Sequence record: ON287375.1
DNA length: 64,000 nucleotides
Strand: one strand, 5' to 3'
Under the pieces are notes generated by a model. The model was not told the origin of the DNA and ran no database searches. It saw only the letters and a list, made by a program, of their open reading frames with translations. This document shows positions 33,201 to 59,572 of the stretch, in pieces. The position numbers were made by a program, and so were the translations under genes. Every line of letters starts with the position of its first letter. The stretch's first letter is position 1.

Positions 33201-34369
33201 CCTACTTGTTCAACAGTATTAGGGAAGTTGGTGCTCAAATGACCTTCATAGATCATAGAACCATCGGTATCATGACCTGTGAATTTCAGAGGACCAAAGT
33301 TACCTTGCTGGAGCATCTGGGAAGGTGGCGCTGTGATCTTAACTTCTTTACCTTTGTAGAAAGCTTTGATCTTAACAATTACATCAGAACCAGAAGGAGC
33401 TGTAACTGTAGGGGGATCAATCTCAAAGGTCAGATCAAGTTCATTATCTTTCTCGATAATTACATTGATCTTAAACGTTTTCTTAACGGGACGGTTTTGC
33501 CACATATAGGTAACACGGACAAAGATCTCATCGTGAACTTCTTTCTCAGCAGAACCATAAATGGTTTCACCCAGAATGAAGTTACCGTCTTCAGAACGTT
33601 TAGGAATAGTGTAACCAGAACCCGTACTGATCTCGATCTGAGCTTCATGGGTAATGTCGATCGTGGTGTTGAACCAGTAAGTGTTTGGGATGCTGAAGTC
33701 TTTACCACGTTGAGTAGTAATAGACTCTGGCAAGTTAGACGTGATTCCAGGGACATTAGCTTCATCCAGAACCAGTTCATAAATGAACAGCGGATAAGTA
33801 CCAGTACCGAAAGACGCATCAGTGATTTTAACAGTACCTGATTCCAGGGTGTCGTAATCAATGAAAGTCAGAGATTCACGTTCAGTGACATACTCACTAA
33901 AGAACAGTTCACCAAAAGCAGCCATTGGGCCAGAGATAGTCTTAGCTTCTTCTTGAGAAACCAATACACCATAGTTGTTCAACCACTTACACCATAACAG
34001 TGCATGATCAACTTTATTGGCTTTAACATAAGCTTTCAAGTTATCCAGGTCTTCGATCTCGATCATAGGAACGGCGAAGTCTTCCAGGATATCTTTCATC
34101 TGTACACGAGTGATGTCGACGTCAACACGTGCAAAACCGGTTTTGCGCGCAGTAAAGCAAACGCGAGTAATACCATCTGGGAATGCTACTGGATTCTCAA
34201 TAACTAAATCACCAGCAACAAGTCCAGTGTAACGCTCTTTAGCGAGAGCTAACTCGTCCTCAGGTCCTTCAACCTCAAGGCGTTTGATACGTTCCTTTAA
34301 GAAACGCTCAACAGGCGTGTATAACGGATCGTTAATACACTTTTTGTTAATCTTAATTTGCTCTGCCAT
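24248..34369 (-). CDS. giant Ig-like repeat virion fibre segment 1, 3373 aa, with conserved N-terminal domain
   Basis: Start at ATG 34369 (MAEQIK) after aggag SD; ~200-aa N-domain plus ~29 repeats of ~100-115 aa. Confidence 0.92.
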   Translation of the reverse strand: MAEQIKINKKCINDPLYTPVERFLKERIKRLEVEGPEDELALAKERYTGLVAGDLVIENPVAFPDGITRVCFTARKTGFARVDVDITRVQMKDILEDFAVPMIEIEDLDNLKAYVKANKVDHALLWCKWLNNYGVLVSQEEAKTISGPMAAFGELFFSEYVTERESLTFIDYDTLESGTVKITDASFGTGTYPLFIYELVLDEANVPGITSNLPESITTQRGKDFSIPNTYWFNTTIDITHEAQIEISTGSGYTIPKRSEDGNFILGETIYGSAEKEVHDEIFVRVTYMWQNRPVKKTFKINVIIEKDNELDLTFEIDPPTVTAPSGSDVIVKIKAFYKGKEVKITAPPSQMLQQGNFGPLKFTGHDTDGSMIYEGHLSTNFPNTVEQVGGLYTAEFTYNEGDVTSKAPAYVNVILTRPETAPKFEIRSFPAVIRGYKNDKGLLTVGAFYNNEPISPTDLQIKTGVKGDKGLIEYNSVDQLGVNYTLIKDANKPGQEIQDVYDQRFAWIAPTGVRYTITRQVTVIVAQVSTVEVVPLYPNPIEVKKYQFGGYPFKLLVNGADVTGGISGYQFEDPSEYITHKKGSDVQWIVTKTPGADEESIVTKVPFKFRYTVDGVWRDFTFEQNFRVLPWNPDTGEGGNTDTVAVPANVKIEGLSDSTGYFEFQVYHLADDITDRAVVMKDKLVTPKGIRFDSFSYIPETNVIRANYTKLDPTTEPGKVYIQRPGVDDPKTGDIAIVSITTDVKQSRVLVLSDYDKNTTVEVAGSPELAHITLMFAGKVVPLTDANLSYKRLDETDIRFVDIKDDGIEVVNNIWEYIGETRQSGVDLEYTYTDPLDGNKTKVRFTLPVFTVYPEMRLENAPATIDAAIWDTGTLPYNIIAGKTNWNGAVTSITPIGTSKYIAFNVFNWEVIWAEKEATTITVPLEIKWTVGQAKNRKFITEVTFNLPAWDQITFGGQLDTKSITKDSRVEGSITGNFVYKGKPADDDVVLDKAMSTIPETFIMGVSAPVENKGVVVGYTTTRGGKYLMTLIYRHVPSNLTMSFDIPTDIAWPHELNLVNITKSISGVWESEQTIDLVYNFDGIPLTLNDPKLKLTATSGAGEPVELVKVNDESLTIKLAKGGEQDTDYDYEFKIHVEYTDPTGKLWTNDNTVPVKIHIPGVKIGANPSFNVKVWERGIVGITLVDDQGRKVPIEKLTPRGTNPYITFTEPDNWYVTSGSQTNSITTTLRLSAQYSMGGNTYTLDTESTFTIAKYDGKKLVITEGPKELSGKAGTPGVMKFRFTYAGDPAKNLTVDLTKSTIPKNITLGEITPDGDLPYTLLGQATDTLTITFVRENATNPPVVNDDYVTTTVKVTTTSSDEVFTVESKTPAITIPWMETGTIVLALKYGEYPILGNTPGLKYSLVDNGKPHAIHIVGGTADGVIIQATRSNVSEALTVYPEDIKVTYEVGAPTPKEGTISSKVSIQMGKVGITNNDPIKGKIWDLGSFGQGIKMGDKVLSPIQGYKTTQPENEWIEFIAPRGWEIINAEKTPSTKTIGMQVLYKVDEVEEVQVLDFDASFEIQGSDDPTRFKCTVSPSNLEGAVDVESKLKVRPIYKGKQVGAAATFKPELSTFPKSLKYVSHSMAGVDFELVFEGVEAGLGEMELVFWSPAAGTDPAPRDVWKGKVPTKIMGELGVEIADRDNLLIGKDGDTGEYKLQILFGGIPIDAKQEIANGALKITVEKGEGSSPNAGVLTVTDWNAESFNYSLKGVVAPGREVTVSDFMNITYTYGGNNFTRRVEIPEKYTSAPVAIVPVTPKACKMFETSQIGITSAKCGDLNLLTPSLPSPAESGWMNCELDEEQPNGYITVSVKNFTVVNADVTAKSLTLKMIYNGIYRNWTWKGEAEVVFNIAPWDQKTFIAHFMRGNPSQPIAGDRLALSLEMPMDDESILFETQTVFKDKVSFNDVDTLDYLDTDLKGVLELNKSSPLGGTGASDNRRRYFGQAVSPYEGEIKLVFRVPNSPKPGVENLDWTALYLDCKFIYKPLLVTGINNNLKGGNGDKGTLPLTVKLNDKNIPINDANLKYTMVPDDIIKVTGSTTTGYTYEVITPLDAELGKREIKFSLEYKDPATGFTHKGEFTQPFEVVKPADYPIITPIRVSVAPFNRVGGSTIFKITVNGVDVVSQCKPISITPVNSADEGVLVLAGDEANDNAWMWCTDYHIGNPPSAEIKTTWVIEVPFRGGTIQVPDVVLPTLVASSTSHAVWIQGTGAPNPFPLGDGYEDEIRFKITNRGLPTTKVTLDEAAGSYGPYFEVISVEPDGDEMVLKYKGKSSFFAKFNFYWKVEGYDGTNDTQQRGVVQLNAYQIPSIESVTDPLSLKIFQQFELPFKVMAGTTDITKLCTWTAVDTDYIEIFRPINTQLGPSGQVVKADTTEVKKEVIFTIQSPASHGNLTLTQKVNIIIAAWDQIEFYGIPTTGFVKQDDGLVVPIPFTNTWNAVIVQAMMMNKVRPNGGGVSSLSDFLKITSSDPDAVTQISQISDGNGVTSRIMPNKAGKFPGTMVLRYKGNAAEASAPNGYPAGTEGKNQSTIDVTWYVFEDKITFREGFEPKPLIIPNGSTAVIDVPFDAVWGLRQVMINSTAEVNFVGLSHDTGIASLFGQNNTTGTNRFNWDKDRYKIQPAKITVGESDVTSYYTFNIQWINPINKKNYSFSYDQPIIFKGKEGAKDPVLTVTDVQEVTTDVWKKQTGLPFKLAIDGVNYPIDTSTVTSVKVADADKAWLEAGPKLTDGYRVIDGDPEPSVKEGTFILTVVQGPRTWEIEQKVKFNISAYDGNSLRMNIRLPNSFNNGVAIPVNTNTLIMFEGTFQGVALTNNYNKLSYWPAKSSQTQIEVYGQTFQQMYYQLSAKGILDSQDSEQATYCIGFKEKENDPNAKEGVDYVILTIPTYCYNPNRFYPVTWDPVIEGMAGTNLNYKWNFTLRRGIVASKLGSGTNAASSTDIKPAGVLNRTGFSDNQLEYAFASEIDVATKETDMTIMIGNTSDFDTMAARFPVKAIQHTNVPFPTIKDPQTELTVHYNDTGAVPFKVDWKGTDVTDQISIVRISDNSYIEIKDKQWHVKHADPQTVKVMPTIEADIVLDSVTFTLKQQVTFTVLGYNGKQINVEAGFALLMVDEVGYLEIKGDYSGDPLSGNVIFDAANSDNGGIVTFGAYEFTTNESMVIKLTGKAPGEDGVRIRIKSVHDTGNGNIGSDYVDLYPKVTVLPKELTPAARFETTGEGNYWEPPVLGQAVMLGDKPLANTDSDLIIEILDYPDVTIKTLSSATVGYSFTNNSDTEIKHQFKQKFTYKGRSEYVVDITLTQLPSPTTPFVTDITQIDAEYGKSYLAPFKVISPR

Positions 34370-34440
34370 TAGCAGGCTCCTTTTCAAAAATAGAGATTCT
34401 AAACTTTACAGGCTTTAAAGCAAAGGATTCCTAACTCCAT

Positions 34441-34449
34441 ACCATAATA
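34441..34449 (-). promoter_or_regulatory. putative late promoter, TATG core
   Basis: tattatggt upstream of the 3373-aa gene, just after a hairpin. Confidence 0.4.
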
Positions 34450-34453
34450 AAGA

Positions 34454-34475
34454 GAACCCAGGTTTCCCCAGGTTC
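34454..34475 (-). terminator. hairpin terminator
   Basis: gaacctggg-GAAA-cctgggttc followed by tcttt on the minus strand. Confidence 0.65.
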
Positions 34476-34483
34476 CCTTCAGG

Positions 34484-37312
34484 TTATTTGGTACCTTCTA
34501 TAGAGATAACTAATGGATAGAAGTTAACATCTGGAGATGGGAATCTGAATATAGCGTCAGCAAAGAAAGAAGTACCTTTAGTTGGTTTCTCAGTTGCTTT
34601 AACTTTAACATATCCGATACCAGTTTGACGATCATAAATAAGATCAATCTTTCTGGCTTCTATATTGACGTTGTGTTTCCAGAAGTCATCAATACGAATT
34701 AACTTAGGAATCCCACCGAGGGCGTCACGGAACAACCAACGATAAGTGAGTATCCCTTTATCGAACTTGTGATCCAACTCGGTAGCTGTAGCTGCTGGGC
34801 CATAGTAAAAGTCGCCAGTAGAAACTTCGGCACTATAGTTAGTCCCAACAACATCAACAATGAAATCAATATTGAAGTTAGTTACTTCTTTAACACTACC
34901 CAACTCTCTTGAGTGTTTGATTTCCCCAGTAAGGAAATTATACTCGAAGTTCATTGGATAATTTTCCATGTCATCTGGTTTGACCACAGAGAGTGCACGT
35001 GGAATAGCTGTGTTAGATTTAAGTTGGTGGGTAAAGATAATACGTCCATCTTTAATTTCGTACTTAGCTAACTCGGTCCAATAACGAGGTCTTGGTTTAT
35101 GGACTTCACTAACCGAAACAGATTGAATGTGACTACCTTCCGCACCAACAATTTCCAGTTTAGCCTTCAACGCATATTTAACTTGTTCGTTATCAATAGG
35201 CTCACATTTGATGTTAAATGTCAGGACACCTGTTTGATCATCGAAGTTCTGTGCGTAATCAACCGTCTTCTCAACATAGACATTGGAGATTTGCTCCACG
35301 CCTAACAGCTTGACATCAGTAGGTAATGAATGGTCTTTGAGAATTGGTGTGATTTTAACAATTAACTGATCGCCGATAACTACGGTGTTTTTGTTGAATG
35401 CAGCTGGGAAGTTATCCGATCCAAATTTAACCTTGCTTTGAAAGGGAGTTTCCAAAGGTGATTCATAGCCAGGCAGAATGGTCTTACCTTTAACAATGTG
35501 CGTTTCAGCTAAACCAGTTGGAGTGAATTTAAACAGGATTGTCAGAAGTCCATTACGGTAAACGACCTTAGGTGCGACTACTTCAATGCCGTTCAACTCA
35601 ATACGGTTACCAATGAGTTCTAAAGCGGCAGGAGACGTCCCATCAGCAAAGGTGGGGCGTAATACCACTTTCTCTACATCATTCACTACAGAGTGTTCTA
35701 CAACCTCATATTGAAGTTGCGTTCCACCTTCTGGTTCAGGGATATAATCCACAGTCTTAAGGTGTAAAGGTACTTTAACAAACACACCAGTCTCTACTAC
35801 AACAGAACCGATAATCTCAACTTCTATAGCTTCACTGGTTTGAGCAGGTAATTCAAAGTATCCTGTAACCTTATTATTAGAGGTATCCAAATTCTGAATA
35901 ACTTTAATAGATGATGGAATACGATTAACCAGCAAATGTAAAGAAGTGGCATCAATTGATTTGATCTTAGAATCAGAAACTAATGAAAACTCATAAGACA
36001 TGGATTCTTCATTGTCTCTAACAATCGACTCGCCGTAGATTGCAATTGGATTAATAGTTGCTTGTGTCATCCAAGGTACTGGCTTGTTGTCAATAATGAA
36101 ATGACCACGGAGTTTATAATTCAACTGTCTACTGATATCGGTGGCAACTTCCCAAGAAGCAATGAACTCATTAGTCCCAGGAATCCAATCAACTCTAGGG
36201 CTTAAACCACCAATCAAATTAGAAATAAAATCTGCTGGAGGAACATGCAAGTTCTGGAGTTTGTAATTCCAATCTTCTTTAGAATTAATACTGAAACGAA
36301 CCTGAACAATACCAGAACTAAAAGTTACTGTCTCAACATCTGCTCTGTAAGTTGATTGATGTGTATAGCCGACAGTTAAGTTGAAATCAACGGCTGGGTA
36401 ATCTTCAGCTTTAGCTTTGGTAATAAAGTTGTAATCTATAGTCCCTTCTGGAACAACACTCACTACAATACCAAACTCATACAACCCTGTTTGAGAATCG
36501 TAACTAATGGTGTTAGGTTGGACGATACCTGTAGGTACATTATTACCATATAGGAATGGTGTCACTAATGAGAAAGAACTTGGAGGTAATCCAGTATCAG
36601 CCCATTTAACTTCCATCATAATGTGGAGAGTCTTTTCTTTGAGAACTTTGCTGATAACTTTATAGTTAATAGTTTTAGTTCTTTCCAAACGCCCTTCAAA
36701 AGAAACAACTGCACCTGGTTGATCTGGTGTAGATCTAACTGCTGACTGATATTTCATATCAGCGTACTTAGCTTTGCTTTTAGCTTGGTATTCCCCGATC
36801 AACTCACCTGTGATTGGGTTATAGGTTTGAGATACAATTTTGTTACTAACTAAATTACCGGTAGGTTCTGCTTCACCATCAAAGCAGGCAAACTTAGGAA
36901 TTTTACCGTTAGTTCTTCTTACCTTTAAAGTCACGACAAACTTGTCATCATGGAATTTAAAGGAAGGAGATTTAACTTCCAAAGCTGGTTCTGGAATACG
37001 AAGCTTTTCGTTATGCTCAAAAGGTGTGGGATATTTCTCACCGACAATGGCATAACTACCAGTGATCACAAATGGGACTTTAACATCTGGATCTGTTTCG
37101 GTCTCCACCTTAAACACTGTGCGGTAAGTACCTGTATTTGGTTCATAGCCTTGTGATTCAGGTTTGGTATCAATTCCCTTAATTTCATTAAGGGAAACTT
37201 GTTTAGGATAACCGCCTCTTGTGTAGCGAATGACATGCTCCACAACTAGACGATCGATACCTTCTCTTTTTATTCCGCCACTAAGATATATAGTGGTTGG
37301 ATGATCGATCAT
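34484..37312 (-). CDS. Ig-like repeat putative virion protein, 942 aa
   Basis: SD ggagg; ~9 repeats carrying a Y/F-x-x-x-T-G motif. Confidence 0.85.
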   Translation of the reverse strand: MIDHPTTIYLSGGIKREGIDRLVVEHVIRYTRGGYPKQVSLNEIKGIDTKPESQGYEPNTGTYRTVFKVETETDPDVKVPFVITGSYAIVGEKYPTPFEHNEKLRIPEPALEVKSPSFKFHDDKFVVTLKVRRTNGKIPKFACFDGEAEPTGNLVSNKIVSQTYNPITGELIGEYQAKSKAKYADMKYQSAVRSTPDQPGAVVSFEGRLERTKTINYKVISKVLKEKTLHIMMEVKWADTGLPPSSFSLVTPFLYGNNVPTGIVQPNTISYDSQTGLYEFGIVVSVVPEGTIDYNFITKAKAEDYPAVDFNLTVGYTHQSTYRADVETVTFSSGIVQVRFSINSKEDWNYKLQNLHVPPADFISNLIGGLSPRVDWIPGTNEFIASWEVATDISRQLNYKLRGHFIIDNKPVPWMTQATINPIAIYGESIVRDNEESMSYEFSLVSDSKIKSIDATSLHLLVNRIPSSIKVIQNLDTSNNKVTGYFELPAQTSEAIEVEIIGSVVVETGVFVKVPLHLKTVDYIPEPEGGTQLQYEVVEHSVVNDVEKVVLRPTFADGTSPAALELIGNRIELNGIEVVAPKVVYRNGLLTILFKFTPTGLAETHIVKGKTILPGYESPLETPFQSKVKFGSDNFPAAFNKNTVVIGDQLIVKITPILKDHSLPTDVKLLGVEQISNVYVEKTVDYAQNFDDQTGVLTFNIKCEPIDNEQVKYALKAKLEIVGAEGSHIQSVSVSEVHKPRPRYWTELAKYEIKDGRIIFTHQLKSNTAIPRALSVVKPDDMENYPMNFEYNFLTGEIKHSRELGSVKEVTNFNIDFIVDVVGTNYSAEVSTGDFYYGPAATATELDHKFDKGILTYRWLFRDALGGIPKLIRIDDFWKHNVNIEARKIDLIYDRQTGIGYVKVKATEKPTKGTSFFADAIFRFPSPDVNFYPLVISIEGTK

Positions 37313-37337
37313 ACTTCCTCCGATATCGATACTGTTT

Positions 37338-37348
37338 GGACATAGAAT
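37338..37348 (-). promoter_or_regulatory. putative late promoter, TATG core
   Basis: attctatgtcc, sharing ATTCTATG with the 16301 site. Confidence 0.45.
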
Positions 37349-37355
37349 CTGATAA

Positions 37356-37383
37356 AGAGTTCCTGGGTTAACCCAGGAACTCT
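37356..37383 (-). terminator. 28-bp perfect palindrome / terminator
   Basis: agagttcctgggttaacccaggaactct directly after the 1035-aa stop. Confidence 0.75.
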
Positions 37384-37390
37384 AATACCA

Positions 37391-40300
37391 TTAAGGTTCT
37401 ATAGTGAGTGTGATACGGGTACTTTGGGAACTACATTTAACATCGGCATTGCTAAACCAAATTTCATAGTCAGTGCTAGCTTTACTCATGACATAACAGG
37501 TAAAGGTCACAGTCTTTTCATCAATGGCTTTGGCGTCTCTGATCCAGTTAAATGTATTGGTTCCGCCTTCTGTAGCTCCATAGGTGTAATCTCGTTGTAC
37601 CACGAACTTATCAGAAGTTATTCCGTTTTCTGGAAGTTTGACAGTGAATACAGCAAGATCCCTTTCTTTATCGTAGACAACCGATACATTACCAGGGTCA
37701 ACTGGGATATAGTCAAACTCTGTTCTATAGGTATATTCGACACCATCAGCTAAGATGACAATATTAGTCGCACCGCTATCAGGTTTATTGATACCGTTTA
37801 TATGCATACTTAAACTTCCGGTACCATAAAGACCTTGGGATGCCTTAGTGATACTTAGTGGTCCAGTACCTTCCCAAATACCAGGTTCGAATCCTTTCAC
37901 TTCCCATTTATCAACGTAGACAGTGTTTCCTTTCTCGTCGATAACTCTGAATATTCCAGGGGTACTATACTTGACCATGTTCCCCCATTCACCCACTAGT
38001 TGTTTACCACCAGTATACCCGTACCGTTGTTCAAAGGAGATTTTAGGGTAACCGATATATCCATACGCTGAACCAACACCTTCCATGAGAAGAGTATCAA
38101 CAACAGTTTCATCTAAACGGTTGAACTTAAGTCCATAACCTGTATCATTCTCGGTTATGTTCACGCTGTTCCATGGAGCACCATTCAGTTTCACATTACC
38201 ATAAATACTTGGCTTGGTAACTGGGGTTTTAGCTGGGTCATTAAAGAAGAACTTAATCTTACCATCAAACTGGAATTTAACATCTGTGGCATCTAAAGAT
38301 TCAGGTTCTGCAATAATACCAGTAGCTCCTGCTGGCATCGGCATTAGACCTTCAAAGGTCCCATTCATATAGGTTGATGAGTTAGGAACGCTCTTATCAT
38401 CAAACCAAAGGTTATTGGTAACAGATGTTGCTTCAGAGAACTGTGGTGCCGTAAAGGTTATACGGTACATGTCCTCATTTCTAGCATTAGCGGTTTTTAT
38501 TTCTGAATCGAATGTTTTCTTAGTTCCATTCTCAGTATAAGTCAATAAAGCAGTGGAAGCGCAGATAAGGTTTTTAGCTGAAGTATCCTCTCCAGATACG
38601 CCTATATCCATGCTTGCCATTGACGTACTGGTACTCATCCCACTATACTGATTGAAGAAGATTTTCTTTCTTTCAATTTCTTTACTGAAAGTAATCTCAT
38701 CAGAACCATTAACTAATACACCAGAGATCTTAGATTTGGTTGGTGCATCTGGATTCAACTGGAATGATAATGTATAGTGTTCGCCGTCAGGAGTCGCATT
38801 GATAGGTTCCAGTACAAACCCAGTACCGGCGATATCCTTATAAGACCATTTATCAGCTTGAGCTTTAGGGTAACTACCAGTTACGGTCAGAACACCTAAT
38901 TTAAGATCAGAAACCTCTACATCCATAGCGGCTTGCTTGACATCAGTAGTCATTGTGATCGATGCATCAGGAACATCAAGGTAGTCTGGGAATGAGAAGT
39001 TTACAACGGTCTCCAGAGACAAGTTATCCGTTTCTAAGGCTTTGTCCTTGACTGAGAATTTTAACAATTGTTTCTGAGTAAGATCTTTATCAACAATTTC
39101 ATAATCGACTACCTCACCACCGACTTTAGTTACGATAGTAATGGTCGGGTTAACCGCATCACTATTGTTGGATGGGAACTTATACTCAACTTCATAATTA
39201 ACCAACTTACTTTCGATATCAAAAGTATTCTTAACTTCTTTTAATTCCACAGCTTCTTTAGGCGTAGGTGGAACTAGCTTATAAAACCAACTTGGACTAT
39301 TGAAGGTGCTGAATGCAACTTGACGATCAAGCTCACCTTTAAGAATTACATTACCGGTGAAGTAGCGAAGTGCTGGAGCTTCTGGATTATAATCATAAGG
39401 GCCAGTAAAGTTAATGACGCCAGCAGAAGGGGAAGTGATGTCAGTGGCTACTGCATCTTTCATTTCCTCATCCCCACCATTAATAAGGTAAGCTTTATTA
39501 AGGTCGAGAGTTCCCACACTGTCTTCATAAGTAAGTGTGATTTGAGCTTTATCTTCGCTCAACTGTTTTACTGCGCCAGAGAGTCTCAAGACTTTAGGTG
39601 CCGCATGGTTGATATTGTAAGAATAGATCTCATTATCAACCTTCATCATACCTTGCGCCATAAAGATACGATCAGTTAAAGCGTCGGTATTATATTCCCA
39701 GCTCACTACCATACACTGACCATTTTCAGTGATTTCCTGAGTGGTCTTGATATTGAGAAGATCGGTACTTTTAGTTGGATCATTAACAACCCAAGCAGTA
39801 GGTGTTCCTTTATTACCATCTTTATCTAGCAAGTAGATATTTGCAGTCATCTTACCGTCGGCTAGTGAAACCACTTTAGAATCAACAGTGTATTTATTAG
39901 CTGCATCATTATAAGCTTTCTGTGAAGTAAGCTTAATGATCGTATCATTAATGGATGGGTCAATAATGGTTAAATCACCACTATAGATTTCATTCAATTT
40001 AGGGAACTCATCCCAGGTTATTTTAGAGAAGAAAATATTACCAAGCAGCTCAAGAACATTTGCTTTGAGATTATCGGTGTTGGGCAATATGATAACCAAC
40101 TGATCGGCATCTGTTCTATTAACAAGGAATCCAGGTTCAGGGATTTCTTTATTTAAGAAAGCTTTGAACTCATCTAACGTACTAGTGTTCTTTACTGGTA
40201 CATTGAAGGTTTCAAATATTTCTAAGATATTCTGCTTCTCTATCTCGATATCCACACGAGCAAAACCAGTCTTACGAACGGCAATGCAGACCATAACAGA

Positions 40301-40498
40301 ACCACTCTTAACTTTAGTAGCTGGCTCTATGGACACATCTTTGTAAGTTAGACCAGTATAACGTTCTTTAGCTAATGCTAGCTCATCTGCTGGACCATTA
40401 GCCTCTAGATCAGCTAAACGTTTATCAAGGGCTTTCTTAACACACAACCAGACAGGATCCTTTATGTTCTTGTCTTTTTCATCTAATACTACAGTCAT
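37391..40498 (-). CDS. putative virion fibre protein, 1035 aa, with conserved N-terminal domain
   Basis: SD ggagga; N-terminus homologous to the 3373-aa and 201-aa proteins; beta-rich repeats. Confidence 0.88.
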   Translation of the reverse strand: MTVVLDEKDKNIKDPVWLCVKKALDKRLADLEANGPADELALAKERYTGLTYKDVSIEPATKVKSGSVMVCIAVRKTGFARVDIEIEKQNILEIFETFNVPVKNTSTLDEFKAFLNKEIPEPGFLVNRTDADQLVIILPNTDNLKANVLELLGNIFFSKITWDEFPKLNEIYSGDLTIIDPSINDTIIKLTSQKAYNDAANKYTVDSKVVSLADGKMTANIYLLDKDGNKGTPTAWVVNDPTKSTDLLNIKTTQEITENGQCMVVSWEYNTDALTDRIFMAQGMMKVDNEIYSYNINHAAPKVLRLSGAVKQLSEDKAQITLTYEDSVGTLDLNKAYLINGGDEEMKDAVATDITSPSAGVINFTGPYDYNPEAPALRYFTGNVILKGELDRQVAFSTFNSPSWFYKLVPPTPKEAVELKEVKNTFDIESKLVNYEVEYKFPSNNSDAVNPTITIVTKVGGEVVDYEIVDKDLTQKQLLKFSVKDKALETDNLSLETVVNFSFPDYLDVPDASITMTTDVKQAAMDVEVSDLKLGVLTVTGSYPKAQADKWSYKDIAGTGFVLEPINATPDGEHYTLSFQLNPDAPTKSKISGVLVNGSDEITFSKEIERKKIFFNQYSGMSTSTSMASMDIGVSGEDTSAKNLICASTALLTYTENGTKKTFDSEIKTANARNEDMYRITFTAPQFSEATSVTNNLWFDDKSVPNSSTYMNGTFEGLMPMPAGATGIIAEPESLDATDVKFQFDGKIKFFFNDPAKTPVTKPSIYGNVKLNGAPWNSVNITENDTGYGLKFNRLDETVVDTLLMEGVGSAYGYIGYPKISFEQRYGYTGGKQLVGEWGNMVKYSTPGIFRVIDEKGNTVYVDKWEVKGFEPGIWEGTGPLSITKASQGLYGTGSLSMHINGINKPDSGATNIVILADGVEYTYRTEFDYIPVDPGNVSVVYDKERDLAVFTVKLPENGITSDKFVVQRDYTYGATEGGTNTFNWIRDAKAIDEKTVTFTCYVMSKASTDYEIWFSNADVKCSSQSTRITLTIEP

Positions 40499-40537
40499 CT
40501 CTTCCTCCAGAGGGAAAGGTTATATTTAGTCAGGGTA

Positions 40538-40546
40538 TGACCATAG
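40538..40546 (-). promoter_or_regulatory. putative late promoter, TATG core
   Basis: CTATGGTCA, identical to 16301-16309. Confidence 0.5.
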
Positions 40547-40559
40547 GATCCATACATAT

Positions 40560-40589
40560 AGAGAAGAGGGCCCGAAGGCCCTCTTCTCT
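40560..40589 (-). terminator. hairpin terminator of nrdB
   Basis: 13-bp perfect stem with a UUCG loop on the minus strand. Confidence 0.8.
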
Positions 40590-40607
40590 TTAATATGTGT
40601 TTATTTA

Positions 40608-41741
40608 TTACAGTTGGAAGTCGTCGAAAGCACCTTCATCTACAGCAGAGTCAATCTGACCTACCAGGTAGGAAGATACTTCTACTTCTTGTGGAGCCAC
40701 CTGAACGTTATCAGATACCAACCAAGAGTTGATCCATGGAATTGGGTTAGTCTTAGTCAGGAATGGGGTACTCAGACCAATTGCATTCATGCGGATGTTT
40801 GCGATGTATTCAACATACTGGCACAGGATCCCTTCTGACAGACCAATCATAGAACCATCTTTGAACAGGTAGGCTGCCCATTCTTTTTCTTGTTCCACAA
40901 CTTCCAGGAACATATCAATAGACTGTTGTTTACACTCTTCAGCGATTTCCACCATCTCTGGATCATCTTGACCATATTGCATCAGGTTCAAGATGTGTTG
41001 GGTACCAGTCAGGTGCAAAGCCTCATCACGTGCGATGAGCTTAATGATCTTAGCGTTACCTTCCATCAGCTTACGTTCTGCGAATGCAAAGGAGCAAGCG
41101 AAGGATACGTAGAAACGAATTGCTTCCAGTGCGTTAACAGACTGCAGACACAGATAGCAAGCTTTCTTAATTTCACGCAGGGTAACAACAACACGTTTAC
41201 CATTCACGACGTGTGTACCTTCACCCAGGTAGTAATACTGGTTGATCAGACCGATCAATTCATCATAGTACTTAGATACGGTACCGGCACGACGAGTGAT
41301 GTGTTCGTTATCAACAACGTCTTCAAATACGATAGACGGATCATTAACGATGTTACGGATGATGTGAGTATAAGAACGAGAGTGGATCGTTTCTGAGAAG
41401 CCCCAGGTTTCTGCCCAAGTTTCCAGTTCAGGAATAGAGATGATTGGCAGGAATGCAACGTTAGGACCACGACCCTGTACAGAGTCCAGCAGCGTTTGAT
41501 ATTTCAGGTTACTGATGAAGATATGTTTTTCATGTTCCGGCAGGTTCATGTAGTCAATACGGTCACGAGTAACGTCTACTTCTTCAGGACGCCAGAAGAA
41601 AGAAAGTTGTTTCTCAATCAGCTTTTCAAAGATCTGATGTTTCTGTTGGTCGTAACGAGAAACGTTAACGTTCTGACCCAGGAACATGTGTTCCAGAAGT
41701 TGGTTGTTTTTGTTTTGGTTAAAGGTTGAGTAACCGGACAT
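40608..41741 (-). CDS. nrdB: ribonucleotide reductase class Ia beta subunit
   Basis: Follows enterobacterial NrdB throughout ([49 protein letters not shown]); start ATG 41741 after ggag. Confidence 0.97.
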
Positions 41742-41979
41742 GATGTTCTCCAATAGATAATTTTGTTTACAGGAATTTGCTGTTAGCTAATGATTAGTGT
41801 TGGAATAAAAACTTAAAGATAACCTAAAATAAATTCTTAATGGAAGACGCTATTATACGTTAACTTAAAGATGCTTTCACCGAAAGGTGGGAGGGAAAGG
41901 GTGGATTTGTTTATATAGCGATTACGTAGTAATCATCCTTTTAAGTCTTTTGAACTTTCACTTCAATTTTCTTTTGGGT

Positions 41980-41999
41980 AGATATTATCTACGTGTATA
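41980..41999 (+). promoter_or_regulatory. putative early promoter, copy 3
   Basis: agatattatctacgtgtata; perfect TAGATA-T-TATCTA palindrome at 41979-41991. Confidence 0.7.
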
Positions 42000-42039
42000 G
42001 CTTGTAAGTTATTACGTAAACAAATTTTAAGGATCAATT

Positions 42040-42633
42040 ATGAAAAGCATTATTGGTTATTATTACGAGCCGTTGAGTCAAGTAGAACGGGAGATGATGT
42101 ATAACCACTTCCAAAAGGAATGGGATACTAATTTTACTGAGATGTTGGCATCTCGTATTATCCGTGCAATGCATGAAGCCCAACGTGATCCTATTTGGCT
42201 AAATGGTCGAGTAGATGCATACCTGGAAGCAATGAACCAGCACATGGTCAAATGCTTAACTCAGTTAAGTGAAGAGTTTCCTGGGTTACCTGAACTTAAA
42301 AATGAATCAGTTACTTTCTTCTTAAATGGGGAAGAACTGAAAGTTGAGCTGACGCCTTGGTTAGAATCAGTATATAAACAGGAAACGGTTATTAAATCCC
42401 AGCGCGATCACTATCGTGATAATGTCGGTGGATTGATTTACGAATATAATACGTACCTATTTAGAAATCCTACTGCTCGTGAAGTTTCTCCTTCAACTTT
42501 AGGTCAGTCGGTGGAACGAGCGAACCAAGCCATCTTGGATAAGATGGAAAATCATTGTTATGAACCTCAGACATCTAATCAGGTGTTTGACTTCTCTCCA
42601 ATTCTTCTGAAATTAATTAAGGAAACAAAATGA
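42040..42633 (+). CDS. hypothetical protein
   Basis: SD aagga. Confidence 0.85.
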   Translation: MKSIIGYYYEPLSQVEREMMYNHFQKEWDTNFTEMLASRIIRAMHEAQRDPIWLNGRVDAYLEAMNQHMVKCLTQLSEEFPGLPELKNESVTFFLNGEELKVELTPWLESVYKQETVIKSQRDHYRDNVGGLIYEYNTYLFRNPTAREVSPSTLGQSVERANQAILDKMENHCYEPQTSNQVFDFSPILLKLIKETK

Positions 42634-42893
42634 AATCCATTCCGTACATTTTAATGATTGCCTTTACTATTGCTGTTATGGCGTTTCTTTGGACACCAGG
42701 GGAAGATGAAAATCGTGTATTAGAAAATCAGGGACTTAGTGGTGTAGTTATCGACACGTTAAGTTTCTGGGGGTGTCCTGATGAACAATACGGATATAAG
42801 TTCACCGCCATCAACCAAGCAGGTAAAACTGTAAATGGCGTGATGTGTAAGAACGGATACTTCTTTGGTTCTTGGAACGTTCGTTATTTCTAA
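42630..42893 (+). CDS. membrane-anchored small Cys-pair envelope protein
   Basis: N-terminal TM, LENQGL...GC...YKFTAINQAG..V.GVMC; paralog of the 5068 and 6946 genes. Confidence 0.8.
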   Translation: MKSIPYILMIAFTIAVMAFLWTPGEDENRVLENQGLSGVVIDTLSFWGCPDEQYGYKFTAINQAGKTVNGVMCKNGYFFGSWNVRYF

Positions 42894-42931
42894 GTAGACG
42901 ATCCTTTGCCTCAAACAAAAGGAGTCTTATT

Positions 42932-43219: not shown

Positions 43220-43223
43220 ATCA

Positions 43224-43251
43224 AGAGAGGCTTCCGAAAGGAGGCTTCTCT
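43224..43251 (+). terminator. hairpin terminator
   Basis: agagaggcttcc-GAAA-ggaggcttctct plus T tail. Confidence 0.75.
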
Positions 43252-43732: not shown

Positions 43733-43742
43733 GGGATTAAAA

Positions 43743-46940: not shown

Positions 46941-46959
46941 AAATAATAAGTAAACATAA

Positions 46960-46989
46960 ACCTTACCTACCCAAACGGGTAGGTAAGGT
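46960..46989. terminator. bidirectional terminator
   Basis: accttacctaccc-aaac-gggtaggtaaggt between convergent genes. Confidence 0.85.
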
Positions 46990-47008
46990 CATTATGAATT
47001 ATTTATTT

Positions 47009-47614
47009 TTATACGATCGCTTTTAAATCTTCAATGAAGTAAAGCATTCCCTGGGTTGGTTCAATATTGATTGCTTCAACTGAGAATGTACCCGAATGTT
47101 TACCAGTAGGATCCATAGCGTCCAGTTTGTTAGTAACAATCTTATCCCAATAGATGTTACCCATCAACTTCATCGCGCCGTCTGGATTGCCTTGCTCGGC
47201 TTCAGATACAATACCATACTTACCAGTATCTGTTAATAACACAACACCTGCTTTCTGAGTTCCATTCTTAACGGCTAAAATTAAATCATCTACTTTAGCA
47301 TATTCAGTTACTGTAACTGAGAACTCTTCAAAGATAGGTTTGATAGTTACTTTTTCAACTTCAATATCTGCACGGAAGAAACCGGTCTTACGTGACAGGA
47401 AGCAACAGCGGACAATTCCACTATTGAAAGAAACTGGTGGTTCGATCATCACGTCTTCATGACGTAATCCATCGTAACGTTGTTTAGCTAAGTCCAGTTC
47501 TGGACTAGGCCCTGCTGCCTCTAGTTTAGCGATACGATCGACCATAAACTTTCGGGCAGACAGGAACACGGGGTCATTTATCTTTTTACTATTGATACCT
47601 GAAACAGTGATCAT
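47009..47614 (-). CDS. stand-alone homolog of the fibre N-terminal domain, 201 aa
   Basis: DPVF...GPSPELDLAKQRYDGL...SRKTGFFRADIE aligns with the N-termini of the 3373-aa and 1035-aa proteins. Confidence 0.88.
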   Translation of the reverse strand: MITVSGINSKKINDPVFLSARKFMVDRIAKLEAAGPSPELDLAKQRYDGLRHEDVMIEPPVSFNSGIVRCCFLSRKTGFFRADIEVEKVTIKPIFEEFSVTVTEYAKVDDLILAVKNGTQKAGVVLLTDTGKYGIVSEAEQGNPDGAMKLMGNIYWDKIVTNKLDAMDPTGKHSGTFSVEAINIEPTQGMLYFIEDLKAIV

Positions 47615-49527: not shown

Positions 49528-50701
49528 GTACGAAGCTTGGTACATGGAACAGTTGAACAACATCGTTAGTAATGGACAGCTTCGTGGTGACCGTACTGGA
49601 ACTGGTGTATTGTCATTGCCAGATCTCGAATACCGTCATGATCTGCGAGAGTCTTATCCTGTCCTGTTCTCTCGTTGGTTTAACCTGAAGTTCCCCATCA
49701 TCGAAATCAACTGGATGATGTCGGGTGAAGGTAACATCAAGCAACTGAAAGAAAATGGTTGTCCTTTCTGGAATAGCTTTGCAGTTCAGGGTGATAAAGT
49801 ACTTCCGACCGAACTTAGTCGTACAGAGCGTCTGAAACATCTGGCCATCAAGCAAGGCGTTCCTTATGGTAAGGTTCTCCAGATCTTTGGTTCCGAACGT
49901 CCTGAAGATATTGATATCGAATTGGACAAACAACAGATCCCTAACACTCAGGATATCTTAGTTGCTAAAGACGGTGACTTGGGTCCGATCTACGGTGTTC
50001 AGTGGCGTCACTGGCCGAACCCAGATGGTTCTACCTTCGATCAGTTAACTTATGCATTGGAAACCCTCCGTAAAGATCCTGATAGCCGTCGTGTTGTCGT
50101 GGATTGCTGGAACCCAAGCTATCTACCTGATCCAAAGAAAAGTCCAGCAGAGAACGCTGCACGTGGTAAAATGGCATTGACCCCATGTCACTTTACTTTC
50201 GGGTTCTACACTTGGGAAATTCCTTTCCATGAACGTGTAGAAGAACTGAAGAAAGTTTGTTCTCGTGAAGAGTGGATGTCGGTATACCCTGTTCATCGTA
50301 ATAGTGGGACTATCGAAAAGATCGACCGTTTAATCCAGAAGTATAATGTTCCTAAATACTATCTGGATCTGAAGTTCCTGATGCGGAGTAATGACTGGGT
50401 TCTGGGTCAACCTGCAAACATGAACATGTATTCAGCTATGCTGATGATGTTCGCTAAAGAACTGAACATGGTAGCGCGCTTTGTAAAATATACCGGTTGG
50501 GATGCACATGTTTATTGCAACCATCTGGAAGGCGTTGAAACTTTGAATGAACGTTGGGCAACTGGTCAGCATAAATACTCCACTATCAAAATGGTATTGG
50601 ACTCTGAACCTAAAGGGTTGTTTGGTTACCATCACGATGACTTTAAAGTTGTCGGTAAGTACGAACCACTCTCAAGTATCAAATTCCCTATCGCAATCTA
50701 A
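49511..50701 (+). CDS. thyA: thymidylate synthase with two insertions
   Basis: DRTGTG, LGPIYGVQWR, SRRVVV..WNP, MALTPCH, RSNDWVLGQPAN, DAHVYCNH. Confidence 0.95.
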   Translation: MKTLNKYEAWYMEQLNNIVSNGQLRGDRTGTGVLSLPDLEYRHDLRESYPVLFSRWFNLKFPIIEINWMMSGEGNIKQLKENGCPFWNSFAVQGDKVLPTELSRTERLKHLAIKQGVPYGKVLQIFGSERPEDIDIELDKQQIPNTQDILVAKDGDLGPIYGVQWRHWPNPDGSTFDQLTYALETLRKDPDSRRVVVDCWNPSYLPDPKKSPAENAARGKMALTPCHFTFGFYTWEIPFHERVEELKKVCSREEWMSVYPVHRNSGTIEKIDRLIQKYNVPKYYLDLKFLMRSNDWVLGQPANMNMYSAMLMMFAKELNMVARFVKYTGWDAHVYCNHLEGVETLNERWATGQHKYSTIKMVLDSEPKGLFGYHHDDFKVVGKYEPLSSIKFPIAI

Positions 50702-53821: not shown

Positions 53822-53944
53822 GTGCACTTCTTATATGAATTACTTCTACTTTTAGTAGGAGCCATAGCTACAGGGTTCGTTGCATTCCTTGCTAATGAAA
53901 GTTTCAAGTATTTGAAAACTCGTGTGGTAAATTATTTCAAATAG
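53822..53944 (+). CDS. 40-aa single-TM protein, not in the ORF track
   Basis: SD aggag + GTG; MHFLYELLLLLVGAIATGFVAFLANESFKYLKTRVVNYFK*. Confidence 0.55.
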   Translation: MHFLYELLLLLVGAIATGFVAFLANESFKYLKTRVVNYFK

Positions 53945-53963
53945 ATATTATCTACTTGGTATA
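53943..53963 (+). promoter_or_regulatory. putative early promoter, copy 6
   Basis: agatattatctacttggtata; perfect palindrome at 53942-53954. Confidence 0.65.
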
Positions 53964-53988
53964 AACAAAAGTGTTTAATCTGGAGACA

Positions 53989-54645
53989 ATGATGTCAGAA
54001 CAAGTATCTGTTCCGCGTCCAATGAAACGTGAAGTTTATCCAATGGAAATCATTGGGGTAATATCTGATCAGTCTAACACACCCATCATGAATAAAATTC
54101 GTGGTAACACGGAGCGTTTACCATATCACATTCATACTACTGGGCCTGGTGGTAATGTATCGGCAGGTTTTGCATTAATGGATATGCTGGGATCAATGGA
54201 TGTTAATGTGGTCTATTTCGTTCAGGGGTTCTGTGCGTCAATGAATGCGTGCTTTATCCAGGATCGTGATTTCTTAAGGCTGTGTTATCCACATACCAGA
54301 TTCATGTTCCACAGTTCAAAACTGAAGTTAGAAGGATCCGAAGAGGAAATCGACAACCTCTATAAGAACCTCAAGCTTTATGATACTGAAATCATTCAAA
54401 TTGTTGCCGATGCAGTTGGAATGGAATTCAAAGAAGCTAAACGTAAATTGTTTACTCATGATAAATTCTTCATGGGTAAGGATTTATTAAATGTAGGGGA
54501 AAATGGTGCTGTGGATGGAATCATCCAAACGTCATTGGGTGATCACAAATATCTCTGTAATACTCGCGGTGGTTTAAAAGTGATCGATACTTATATCCAT
54601 CAACGTTCAGACATTGCTGGACTTCCTGTGTGGACTAAAGAATGA
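53989..54645 (+). CDS. clpP: ClpP-like serine protease
   Basis: TGPGGNVSAGFALMDM, GFCASM (Ser), RFMFHSS (His), THDKF (Asp); start at ATG 53989 after ggag. Confidence 0.85.
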   Translation: MMSEQVSVPRPMKREVYPMEIIGVISDQSNTPIMNKIRGNTERLPYHIHTTGPGGNVSAGFALMDMLGSMDVNVVYFVQGFCASMNACFIQDRDFLRLCYPHTRFMFHSSKLKLEGSEEEIDNLYKNLKLYDTEIIQIVADAVGMEFKEAKRKLFTHDKFFMGKDLLNVGENGAVDGIIQTSLGDHKYLCNTRGGLKVIDTYIHQRSDIAGLPVWTKE

Positions 54646-55111: not shown

Positions 55112-56671
55112 ATGTCTTCTGTTCTGACTGAGCAAACTTTCACCAACGCAACTGAAACTCGTGCAATCGTTGATGAAGTAATCAATAATGCATTTGAATC
55201 TGTTTGTTCCACTATGGGTCCGAATGGTCGCTATGTTGTAATCAATCAGCTGAATAATCCGAAGGTCACCAAAGATGGCGTGAGTGTGGCGAAGGCGCTG
55301 GACTTCGGTGAAGCTCGGCGTAACTTGATTGCAAAGATCATCACGGAACCATCGATTAAAACTGATAAAGAAGTGGGTGATGGCACAACTACTACTGTGT
55401 TCATGACCTATCATCTTTATAAAGCATTTGGCGAACGTATGACTTTCCGTAACATCCGTTATCTGGATGAGATGATGCGGAACATCGATGCATATATCGG
55501 TACGCTGATCAAACCAGGTGATCTTCATTCTGAAGACTTCCGCAACATGTTGATGACTTCATCGAACTATGAAAGTGAAATCGTTGACAAGATCCTGGAG
55601 ATCTTTAAGGAACATAAGAATCCGAACATCGTTCTGCAGAACGTTCCAGAACTGCCGAAGGATGAAATCGAGTTCACCAAAGAAATTAAATTCGATGGTG
55701 AGTTCGGTCAGAATAACTATGTTCCAGCTTCTGGTGTAACAACCGTTCCAGAAGGTGCTGCCTATGTAGTGGTGGTTGATGGTAGTGTCCGGAATGTCCC
55801 TGCCGAGTTCTTTAGTCGCATGGCGTTTAAAGCAACCCAACAGGCTGTCATTCTGATCGCTCGAAACTTTGAACCTGCAGCAATGGGTCAAATCAATAAT
55901 GAGAATCAGAAACTGGGTACCATGAAATTTATTCCATATAAAGTTCAGGCAGCTGGTTCTTTGGGTACCGATACCATGAACGACCTGGGTAAATTGCTGG
56001 GGGTTGAACCTGTCTTTGAATTGGGTAGTCTCAATTATGACATGACCAAGATCAATACCGACATGTTCTTCATGACTGCCACTGGTTTACTGATGGAGAA
56101 AGAATCCGAGCACATCACCAAAGTAGCTGATGAGATTCTGGAAGGTCTGGACATTCGCTGGGATAACCTGAGTATCATTCAGCGTCAAACTCCAGTAGGT
56201 CTGAACCTGGCTCGCCGAATTGGTCGCCTCCGCGCAAATAACGTAATCATCAAAGTCACCGGTGTAACTCCAAGTGATGCGACTGAACGTTATTATCGTT
56301 ATGAGGATGCCATGAAAGCCGCACAGACTGGTCAGCAGTTTGGCGTAATACCTGGTATCGGTTATGGGTATCTGATGGCCTCTAACCTGGTTGAGAGCTT
56401 CCCTGAACAATCTGATGAGGAGCTTGAGATCTGTCGTAAGAATCTGGTACAAGTATTGCGTGCTCAATATGAACACCTTACTGGCCATGATTATAATGGT
56501 GGAACTCCTACCTTTATTGATCTGGTAACTGGTGAAGAATCTGACACGCCAATGAATGTATTTGATAATGCTGCCGCTACTATGATCGCGCTGAAGGGTG
56601 CTTGGCAAACTGCTAAGACTTTAGGTAAGATTAGTAATGTAATGGGGCGTTCTAATAAGTCTTATGCATAA
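55112..56671 (+). CDS. groEL: phage GroEL-like chaperonin
   Basis: STMGPNGR, VTKDGVSVAK, VGDGTTT ATP loop, RYEDAMKA, GVIPGIG, VFDNAAAT. Confidence 0.92.
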   Translation: MSSVLTEQTFTNATETRAIVDEVINNAFESVCSTMGPNGRYVVINQLNNPKVTKDGVSVAKALDFGEARRNLIAKIITEPSIKTDKEVGDGTTTTVFMTYHLYKAFGERMTFRNIRYLDEMMRNIDAYIGTLIKPGDLHSEDFRNMLMTSSNYESEIVDKILEIFKEHKNPNIVLQNVPELPKDEIEFTKEIKFDGEFGQNNYVPASGVTTVPEGAAYVVVVDGSVRNVPAEFFSRMAFKATQQAVILIARNFEPAAMGQINNENQKLGTMKFIPYKVQAAGSLGTDTMNDLGKLLGVEPVFELGSLNYDMTKINTDMFFMTATGLLMEKESEHITKVADEILEGLDIRWDNLSIIQRQTPVGLNLARRIGRLRANNVIIKVTGVTPSDATERYYRYEDAMKAAQTGQQFGVIPGIGYGYLMASNLVESFPEQSDEELEICRKNLVQVLRAQYEHLTGHDYNGGTPTFIDLVTGEESDTPMNVFDNAAATMIALKGAWQTAKTLGKISNVMGRSNKSYA

Positions 56672-58416: not shown

Positions 58417-58707
58417 ATGATACCTTGTCGAAAATGTCTGATATTAGCGCTTCTCTTTTCTCTGGGTTTTTGTGCAATAGTAGTTGCCTGCTATGCTAAA
58501 ACACGTTATTCAACTAAAGATTTAATTATCCATTGCACTAACATTAATAAAGGGAATTTCCTTCCATACCCATCAGGTTGTGCTAGACCGGTGGAGATAG
58601 TAGATAATGTCTTTACTTTTGTTAATGCTCAAGGATTAATAGAAACATACGTTATCGTATATAAAAGGGATGGGACTTATCAGTATTATGAAGTCAACCA
58701 TTCTTGA
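58417..58707 (+). CDS. membrane-anchored or exported protein
   Basis: N-terminal hydrophobic segment, Cys pair. Confidence 0.6.
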   Translation: MIPCRKCLILALLFSLGFCAIVVACYAKTRYSTKDLIIHCTNINKGNFLPYPSGCARPVEIVDNVFTFVNAQGLIETYVIVYKRDGTYQYYEVNHS

Positions 58708-58708
58708 T

Positions 58709-58716
58709 ATCCTATG
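58709..58716 (+). promoter_or_regulatory. putative late promoter, TATG core
   Basis: atcctatg, also found on the minus strand at 40542-40549. Confidence 0.4.
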
Positions 58717-58792
58717 AAAGTAATTGACTAATCTCTCACTTCTCATGAAGCTGAGGGAGATGTTCCGTTTTTATCAACATGGAAATTTAATA

Positions 58793-59572
58793 ATGCAACA
58801 GACTCCTACTACCTGGCAGTATCTGCTTGACCTTGTAACCAAATCCAAACTGAAGGCTGCTTCTGAAAGTAAAGATCCAGCGTTCCGTGCTCGTCAGGAA
58901 AAATACTACACCGATCTGAAAGAGAGCGAATGTGCGTTCTCTAAACCTGTTCGTAAAGGTGATCTGTGGTATGTGACTATTACCTGTCGTGGTCGTGGTT
59001 TCCAGCTGCAAGATCTGCCGTACAAAACTGGTACTCTGTTCCCAATGGTTAAGCCAATGGCTAACTATGTAATGGAGCCTTCTTCCGTTGCTGTGAACAC
59101 CATGACTGGCCTGTACTATGTCATGTCTAACGAACATCTGCATCTGCAAGTTCACCCTCAGTCTAACCTGTGGGAAGCTCTGAAGATGACTGGTTATGAA
59201 TTCTCTCCAAGTCAATTCACCACCACTATGTTCGAAGGCCGCAATGAAGAACTGGCAGCTGATGGTTTCATCGATATTAAAGATACTGTTGTTAGCGGTC
59301 GTATCTATGTTTCTTATCTGCAGAAGCGGGCTGAGAAAGTGGAAGATCCAAAACCACCAGTAGCTGATCCAGTTATCCCTCCAGTGGAAACTGGAGTAGA
59401 AGGTGAAGGTACTGCACCTAAACTGGATGGTGGCGTTGATGAGTTCAAAGAGCCAGAAGGTGAAACTCAACCTGAAGCTCCTGTAGAAGAAAAGGCTGAA
59501 GAAAAACAACAGCCTCAGAATCAACAGAACCAGCAGAACAAAAATCAACAACAGAACCAAAAAAGAAAGTAA
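58793..59572 (+). CDS. putative virion protein, remote member of the fibre N-domain family, with E/P- and Q/N-rich tail
   Basis: Likely start ATG 58793 (MQQTPTT); YTDL....E..F..PV...V.IT.R..GF...DL motif. Confidence 0.75.
   Translation: MQQTPTTWQYLLDLVTKSKLKAASESKDPAFRARQEKYYTDLKESECAFSKPVRKGDLWYVTITCRGRGFQLQDLPYKTGTLFPMVKPMANYVMEPSSVAVNTMTGLYYVMSNEHLHLQVHPQSNLWEALKMTGYEFSPSQFTTTMFEGRNEELAADGFIDIKDTVVSGRIYVSYLQKRAEKVEDPKPPVADPVIPPVETGVEGEGTAPKLDGGVDEFKEPEGETQPEAPVEEKAEEKQQPQNQQNQQNKNQQQNQKRK

Follow-up and report, generated by a model that had tools for sequence, protein, structure and literature searches.

Four proteins encoded in a 64,000-nucleotide stretch of the sequence record ON287375.1 (record positions 62001-126000, called the window in what follows; a window coordinate is the record coordinate minus 62000) share one homologous domain of about 190 residues. 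This domain forms the N terminus of a giant protein of 3373 amino acids (aa) and of a 1035-aa protein, in both of which a long C-terminal region, here called the cargo, follows it; it precedes an acidic, Q/N-rich tail in a 259-aa protein; and it makes up the whole of a 201-aa protein. The window belongs to the Serratia phages vB_SmaM-Yubaba (Yubaba) and vB_SmaM-Sureiya, both of which have a hypothetical protein with 100% identity to the 201-aa protein. They are jumbo myophages of ~255 kb that are classified under Petsuvirus and related to Pseudomonas phage OBP. We put at roughly 0.5 the probability that the domain serves as association module in an accessory virion appendage system of OBP/Yubaba-like jumbo phages.

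Three copies of the domain are evident at the level of pairwise alignment, and all three lie on the minus strand. The giant gene (24248..34369, deposited as YUBABA_00820) and the gene of the 1035-aa protein (37391..40498) encode the domain in residues 1 to ~190 of their products, which corresponds to nucleotides 33800..34369 and 39929..40498, respectively. The third gene (47009..47614) encodes the stand-alone, cargo-less copy and is a lone gene whose neighbors lie on the opposite strand. By BLASTP, the N termini of the three proteins align over ~180-196 residues with 33-38% identity (E = 5e-38 for the giant and the 201-aa protein, 2e-27 for the giant and the 1035-aa protein), and a hidden Markov model (HMM) of the domain matched residues 1-195 of both long proteins. 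Invariant across the three copies are DP, R, LE, GP, EL.LAK.RY.GL, D, IE, G, C, and RKTGF.R.D. This reproduces the residue pattern reported in a preliminary description of the window, which had proposed a common N-terminal domain for these three proteins, and the gene starts and lengths given there (34369, 40498, 47614, and 58793) agree with the deposited coding sequences (CDSs); all four open reading frames (ORFs) that carry the domain coincide with CDSs in ON287375.1. Among 25 diverse copies of the domain, four residues, Y47, E58, R75, and D83, are almost invariant.

With the alignment of these 25 sequences, AlphaFold2 (AF2) predicted that the 201-aa protein is wholly one compact alpha/beta domain (predicted local distance difference test [pLDDT] score of 93.6, predicted template modeling [pTM] score of 0.85); the fold was obtained only with this alignment, as a single-sequence prediction was uninformative (pLDDT 45). 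Foldseek found no relative of the AF2 model in the PDB (best E = 0.044), and a VIA-align search of 48,161 chains gave a best Z score of 4.1 over 50 residues. Searches of the PDB sequences with the domain HMM (hmmsearch) returned nothing under E = 0.49 from a library that includes the phiKZ outer-baseplate entry 9xqd, and Pfam, PHROGs, and NCBIfam gave only chance-level matches for all four proteins. Significant matches in BFVD all came from the same phage group, with weaker ones in the Erwinia phages RisingSun and Joad. The modeled fold is thus apparently new.

The 259-aa protein, encoded on the plus strand (58793..59572), had been described as a remote match to the other three. Its pairwise BLASTP comparison with the shared domain was insignificant (E = 1.1). 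We therefore rely on a profile-profile comparison by hhalign of the 25-sequence domain alignment with a 7-sequence alignment (from 7 clusters) of the 259-aa family, which gave a probability of 95.6-96.0% and E values of 1e-8 to 4e-9 over 150 columns; in control comparisons, reversed alignments scored 0.2% and two unrelated phage N-terminal families 0.1-1.2%. The 25-sequence HMM also matched 259-type ORFs directly in the genomes of PS1 (E = 3.7e-6), pEt-SU (1.5e-5), and N1M2 (0.004; all E values per genome), at the same places that were found with the profile of the 259-aa family. A 3-sequence domain profile searched against the Yubaba record missed the 259-aa gene, and the 25-sequence profile found its orthologs in other phages only. 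In structural comparisons, the AF2 model of the 201-aa protein matched the BFVD model of a 220-aa OBP protein with a template modeling (TM) score of 0.67 (E = 1.4e-10, 13% identity) and that of a 258-aa protein with a TM score of 0.70. Judged by its length, the 220-aa entry is probably OBP_252, the ortholog of the 259-aa protein (BLASTP E = 4e-52). The domain fold occupies residues ~17-168 of the 259-aa protein (nucleotides 58841-59296), and residues ~169-259 are first acidic and proline-rich, then Q/N-rich, and end in a basic KRK. E58, R75, and D83 are missing from this family in both the hhalign alignment and the family alignment, such that it keeps the fold of the main family and not its signature. 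The remote match is hence a true homolog by profile (probability of ~96%) and by structure (TM score of 0.67) alike, and because of the BLASTP matches among three of the proteins and the profile-profile, HMM, and fold matches of the fourth, all four proteins are homologous.

That four polar or aromatic residues are nearly invariant in so diverse a set of 25 copies would also be expected if the domain were an enzyme or bound a ligand, with Y47, E58, R75, and D83 forming the active or binding site. We regard this as very improbable, since no enzyme family or fold was matched, the 259-aa family does without these residues although 259-type genes are conserved in eight of eight genomes (see below), and an N-terminal enzyme on a fibrous chain of 5000 residues would be unusual.

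To define the distribution of the domain, its profile was searched against 1.84 billion representative sequences, and 75 protein clusters were found to carry it. In 69 of them the domain starts at most ~16 residues from the N terminus; the other six comprise two apparent truncated fragments, two giants with a tandem double domain, and two weak matches. Domain-bearing proteins range from 189 to 5283 aa and fall into three size groups, of ~200, ~400-1500, and 1900-5283 aa. Kin of Yubaba and Sureiya include Klebsiella phage N1M2, Shewanella phage SXP01, Erwinia phage AH04, Kosakonia phage Kc263, Pantoea phage Survivor, Pseudomonas phage OBP, Edwardsiella phage pEt-SU, and numerous Aeromonas jumbo phages. 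In each of eight phage genomes from at least six genera, the family is represented by a single ~200-aa copy, a single 259-type gene, and between one and four long forms (681-5129 aa). In every phage examined (Yubaba, OBP, and six others), the 201-type gene stands alone and inverted beside a Ser/Thr phosphatase block. No member was detected in phages EL and phiKZ, pattern scans of IMG/VR found no relative, and RisingSun gave a marginal match only (E = 0.026). The RisingSun proteins gp150 and gp151 (227 and 221 aa; MF459646.1 143153-144534) are encoded by adjacent genes near a Ser/Thr phosphatase gene, the same neighborhood as that of the 201-aa gene in Yubaba. They are probable fold relatives of the 259-aa family, to which their sequence similarity is marginal.

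A quick maximum-likelihood tree was built from 74 domain copies; three copies that were fragmentary or truncated at the N terminus were excluded, as was one weak internal match. Its clades follow the architecture of the full-length proteins: stand-alone copies (n = 11), giants (n = 18), and forms of ~1060 aa (n = 12) group separately with support of 93, 94, and 95, respectively, in the Shimodaira-Hasegawa-like approximate likelihood ratio test. Architecture labels changed 14 times on the tree compared with 34.9 times when they were shuffled, and none of 200 shuffles gave a value as low. These groupings indicate that the paralog classes are old and distinct and, because domain copies group by architecture, that the cargo-less copy is an old and stable paralog and not a recurrent truncation. 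The two giants with a tandem double domain (P0068 and P0069) are metagenomic. On the P0068 contig (Logan SRR6161627_368, 10001-22942), nrdB is followed directly by the 3223-aa double-domain giant and then by a 1060-aa protein with one domain, the genes that separate nrdB from the giant in Yubaba being missing. We read the tandem domains and this gene order as a hint, of the Rosetta-stone kind, that copies of the domain work side by side.

The preliminary description had held that the domain is a common docking module that plugs different cargoes into equivalent virion sites. What stands of this proposal is one homologous N-terminal module that occurs with the giant cargo, with that of the 1035-aa protein, with an acidic/QN tail, or with none. 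In its strict form, the domain would be a plug for a single kind of virion site, such as the center of a capsid hexamer or a socket on the sheath or baseplate, for which the four proteins compete and most of which the cargo-less copy fills. Such a plug would account for a single fold with four different C termini, including none, and for the retention of the cargo-less copy in eight of eight genomes, and decoration proteins with an anchor and Ig (immunoglobulin)-like domains are known from phages T4 (Hoc) and T5 (pb10). The equivalence of the sites is weakened, however, because the tree is grouped by architecture, with paralog classes that are old and separately conserved, because E58, R75, and D83 are lost in the 259-aa family, and because tandem double domains occur in two giants. 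In addition, no solved capsid or tail decoration protein in the PDB, including entry 9xqd, matched in fold or sequence. We consider a one-site plug quite unlikely; paralogs placed next to one another at different positions, or binding one another, would fit these comparisons better than interchangeable plugs at one site.

Taken together, architecture, conservation, and analogy make a docking or assembly module of the virion the most economical reading, at the roughly even odds given above, to which the strict version with equivalent sites would add a small further share. In the appendage system that we favor, which would be distinct from the phiKZ-type (gp131-like) baseplate fibers of the same phage, the domain would anchor long and fast-evolving beta-rich chains, 0.4 to 5.3 thousand residues in length, on the particle, with the periphery of the tail or baseplate as the likeliest site, and would probably act together with its own paralogs. 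The 201-aa protein and the 259-aa protein with its disordered tail would supply copies of the domain beside, or head-to-tail with, the cargo-bearing copies, and only a few giant chains would protrude. We infer a location on the virion, late timing, binding between paralogs, and a role in the capture of hosts.

The cargo regions bear on this proposal mainly through their composition. Beyond residue ~190 the giant is rich in T, V, G, and N and poor in Arg, and the minus-strand block of large proteins to which it belongs is likewise T/V/G/N-rich, with 1.4-3.4% Arg; by composition, the cargo looks like extracellular or fibrous proteins. The giant's cargo had no Pfam, PHROG, or PDB sequence match, the cargo of the long forms had no PDB sequence match, and no credible Pfam family was found in the window's six large minus-strand proteins or in 20 representative long forms. 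The C-terminal 840 aa of the 1035-aa protein gave only weak, sub-threshold language-model leads (ESM Atlas) to Ig-like families.

The flanking sequences were read directly for signals of transcription. On the minus strand, a hairpin followed by TATGGTATGG lies 5' of the giant gene (34437..34480) and a hairpin followed by TATATGTATGGATCCTATGG lies 5' of the gene of the 1035-aa protein (40541..40589), each pair constituting a candidate terminator and a candidate late promoter, the promoter of the giant gene being of the phiKZ (TATG) type. Late promoters of phiKZ have a TATG core. Each of the giant, 942-aa, and 1035-aa genes is preceded by a hairpin and a sequence that contains TATG, as are some genes of the structural blocks (YUBABA_00040 and YUBABA_00090) and the capsid gene. 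Directly 3' of the 201-aa gene there is a terminator-like hairpin with a 14-bp stem (46959..46990, minus strand). Several plus-strand genes are instead preceded by an early-type promoter motif, AGATATTATC, with a GTGTATA-like sequence ~8 nucleotides further (700-760, 41990-42040, 47680-47734, 53920-53970, and 59650-59700, with variants near 51730 and 57960); the motif between 47614 and 47734 points away from the 201-aa gene. In many plus-strand genes, a TATAGARRGAAA-like box located 8-12 nucleotides 5' of the ATG overlaps the ribosome-binding region (before the ATGs at 756, 2180, 4289, 6597, 10573, 12563, 51783, 58013, and 59702) and could be a class-specific leader, a processing site, or a middle promoter. 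Both the AGATATTATC early promoter and the TATAGARRGAAA-like box are absent from the four domain genes and from the other large minus-strand genes.

The TATG-containing sequences behind the hairpins of the large genes, which recur before some structural genes, fit a virion appendage and give a hint of late promoters, a four-base motif being too short for proof. Several observations weigh against the appendage. The domain genes sit among genes of nucleotide metabolism and of the early type, outside the structural blocks, and RisingSun gp150 and gp151 are co-oriented with non-structural genes. No receptor-binding or enzymatic domain was recognizable in the 26 long-form or neighboring large proteins that were scanned. 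The OBP and Yubaba records label the homologs "hypothetical protein"; the "virion structural" labels of the OBP record are reportedly homology-based, and their absence from OBP_207, OBP_209, and OBP_226 is hence no evidence against presence in the virion. In the literature, we found no virion proteome or mass spectrometry, no assignment in micrographs, and no expression time course for the family. In a crude RisingSun lysate, gp150 was hardly seen, and electron microscopy of N1M2 showed no tail fibers (PMC7058600). Micrographs of Kc263 are described as having "visible fibers," which are not assigned to proteins.

Some of the same observations would fit a role outside the virion, in which the domain targets or organizes very large proteins within the host cell during infection, perhaps at the phage nucleus, the cell envelope, or an assembly factory, or, in a variant, in which the small copies regulate the large ones or act as their chaperones. 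The surroundings of the genes are non-structural and early-type, the distant RisingSun homologs lie in a non-structural block, no record carries a virion annotation for the family, and the phage group encodes the biology of the chimallin type, with chimallin and PhuZ reported in relatives of Yubaba (AerS_266 paper). Against such a role, the lone inverted orientation, the own terminator, and the lack of the early promoter motif distinguish the genes from their neighbors; in composition the cargo resembles extracellular fibrous proteins; and the nearest architectural parallels in this group of viruses, phiKZ gp131-135 and the DUF7941 proteins discussed below, are both virion fiber systems. On balance, we hold a non-virion role, with its variant, to be unlikely, and we continue to favor the accessory appendage. 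If the domain proves to be a virion module, it would offer a 200-residue piece for locating, pulling down, or re-targeting the giant chains, and a second case in which to ask why such systems require cargo-less paralogs. If it is not, the greater surprise would be that nucleus-forming phages make non-structural proteins of such size.

The appendage may extend to further genes of the minus-strand block. Three large genes 3' of the giant, which encode proteins of 1549, 1071, and 495 aa (14734..24227, minus strand), resemble it in composition and show local similarity to it: residues 4-83 of the 1071-aa protein (16347-19562, minus strand) resemble giant residues 3266-3344 (E = 1e-5), and residues 14-280 of the 495-aa protein (14734-16221, minus strand) resemble giant residues 1275-1552 (E = 1.5e-4). 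These similarities are consistent with downstream genes built from the giant's own modules, and the three genes probably belong to its appendage. A 942-aa protein encoded between the giant and the 1035-aa protein (34484..37312, minus strand) lacks the domain and matches no family; for it and for the three downstream proteins, Pfam, PHROGs, and NCBIfam gave only chance-level matches.

Elsewhere in the window, a GroEL-like gene (519 aa, 55112-56671, plus strand) and a ClpP-like gene (53971-54645, plus strand) lie between the 201-aa and 259-aa genes, and their order matches that of OBP_246 and OBP_244. A small unannotated ORF 5' of the 259-aa gene (58417-58707, plus strand) has a signal-peptide- or lipobox-like start, a hydrophobic run ending in LGFC, and could encode a small exported protein or lipoprotein. 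Short Logan contigs with 95-100% identity to positions 45000-50000 were found in tick metatranscriptomes (two libraries) and in metagenomes from wastewater and silage, so that close relatives of Yubaba are widespread; the contigs are uninformative on transcription, timing, and strand.

The arrangement of the domain family can be compared with several known anchoring systems. The tailspikes and fibers of smaller phages (CBA120 TSP1-4, G7C gp63.1 and gp66, and the SP6 and K1-5 adaptors) conserve their N-terminal anchor while their distal parts can be exchanged, and the family resembles them in the N-terminal position of the module and the variability of what follows. It differs from them in that the folds are unrelated by our PDB searches, and in that their anchors sit on trimeric spikes with known receptor-destroying domains, none of which is recognizable here. 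The decoration proteins T4 Hoc and T5 pb10, which consist of an anchor plus Ig-like domains, provide a second parallel, that of a small anchor from which beta-sandwich domains are displayed, and a filler without cargo would be accounted for if such proteins occupied symmetric sites. However, no sequence or fold match links them to the family, the Ig-like cargo is a weak lead, and the chains of the domain family are 10-50 times longer.

Closer parallels come from two 2026 structural studies, on phiKZ and Goslar, which show that the host-recognition periphery of jumbo phages is made up of paralog families with a shared N-terminal association module. In phiKZ, the shared N-terminal segments of gp131, gp133, gp134, and gp135 dock as a hetero-hexamer at the fiber-attachment sites of the outer baseplate (PMC13250141). 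Both that system and the one described here consist of paralogs, in a jumbo phage of the chimallivirus type, with a common N-terminal module and differing C termini, and both have short, nearly cargo-less members (gp132 in phiKZ, and a 254-aa gp131-like member in Yubaba). We tried and rejected homology of the domain to the gp131-like N termini, for which hhalign with the 25-sequence profile gave a probability of 0.1% (E = 0.55). The profile of these phiKZ N termini matches four ORFs outside the domain family in each of Yubaba and OBP (E = 1e-32 to 5e-7). The Yubaba paralogs (254, 1238, 1254, and 1915 aa; record positions 34524-48677) lie beside a gp130-like gene (YUBABA_00330), the OBP set matches, and by these similarities the Yubaba set represents the canonical baseplate fiber module. 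The domain family would be an additional system, because Yubaba and OBP possess this separate gp131-like set. It further differs in that the gp131 family genes adjoin the gp130-like gene, whereas the domain genes lie at 86-121 kb of the record by nrdB and early-type genes, and in that its cargoes are far longer (proteins of up to 5283 aa).

In Goslar, ten DUF7941 paralogs share a globular N-terminal module for which its authors found no known fold match, and the short forms are the most abundant in the virion, with ~580 copies of gp22 and ~2140 of gp23; filaments of gp22 form in vitro, short DUF7941 forms assemble head-to-tail, and some members bear carbohydrate-binding or leucine-rich-repeat host-recognition parts (bioRxiv 10.64898/2026.04.21.720040). 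The two families are alike in being group-specific and rich in paralogs, and in joining a module either to a disordered linker or to long host-recognition parts, and the 259-aa protein (globular with a disordered tail) and the 201-aa protein mirror the short, gp23-like forms of Goslar. Membership in DUF7941 (PF25613) was rejected, as the four proteins had no Pfam match at E <= 0.01 (the cut-off of the model is 27 bits); the same library matches phiKZ gp126, gp127, and gp143, with 97.5 bits for gp127 and 36.6 bits for gp126. Remote homology was rejected as well, with hhalign probabilities of 0.2% for the main family and 1.2% for the 259-aa family against a DUF7941 alignment of four sequences, which limits the sensitivity, and no Goslar or phiKZ DUF7941 model was among the BFVD matches at E <= 0.001. 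The two families also differ in that presence in the virion and filaments are established for DUF7941, whereas for the domain family both are proposed. One PF25613 ORF was detectable in Yubaba (YUBABA_00080, record positions 6421-6663) and none in OBP, which leaves room for a substitute system, and in the OBP/Yubaba lineage the domain family may take the place of the reduced DUF7941 set. We offer only tentatively, and at low odds, the more specific proposal that the family is a clade-specific substitute with a new fold for the DUF7941 "fiber cloud," in which the 201-aa protein and the 259-aa protein, with its disordered, basic-tipped tail, co-polymerize with the N termini of chains of 1 to 5 thousand residues. 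If true, hosts would be captured at the tail periphery by hubs or by hetero-filaments of great length, and the same architecture would have been invented independently twice. The comparisons with gp131 and DUF7941 point to a third, independent module of this kind, which the OBP/Yubaba lineage would add, unrelated to those of phiKZ and Goslar, carried by some of the largest phage proteins known (up to ~5300 residues) and always accompanied by a cargo-less copy.

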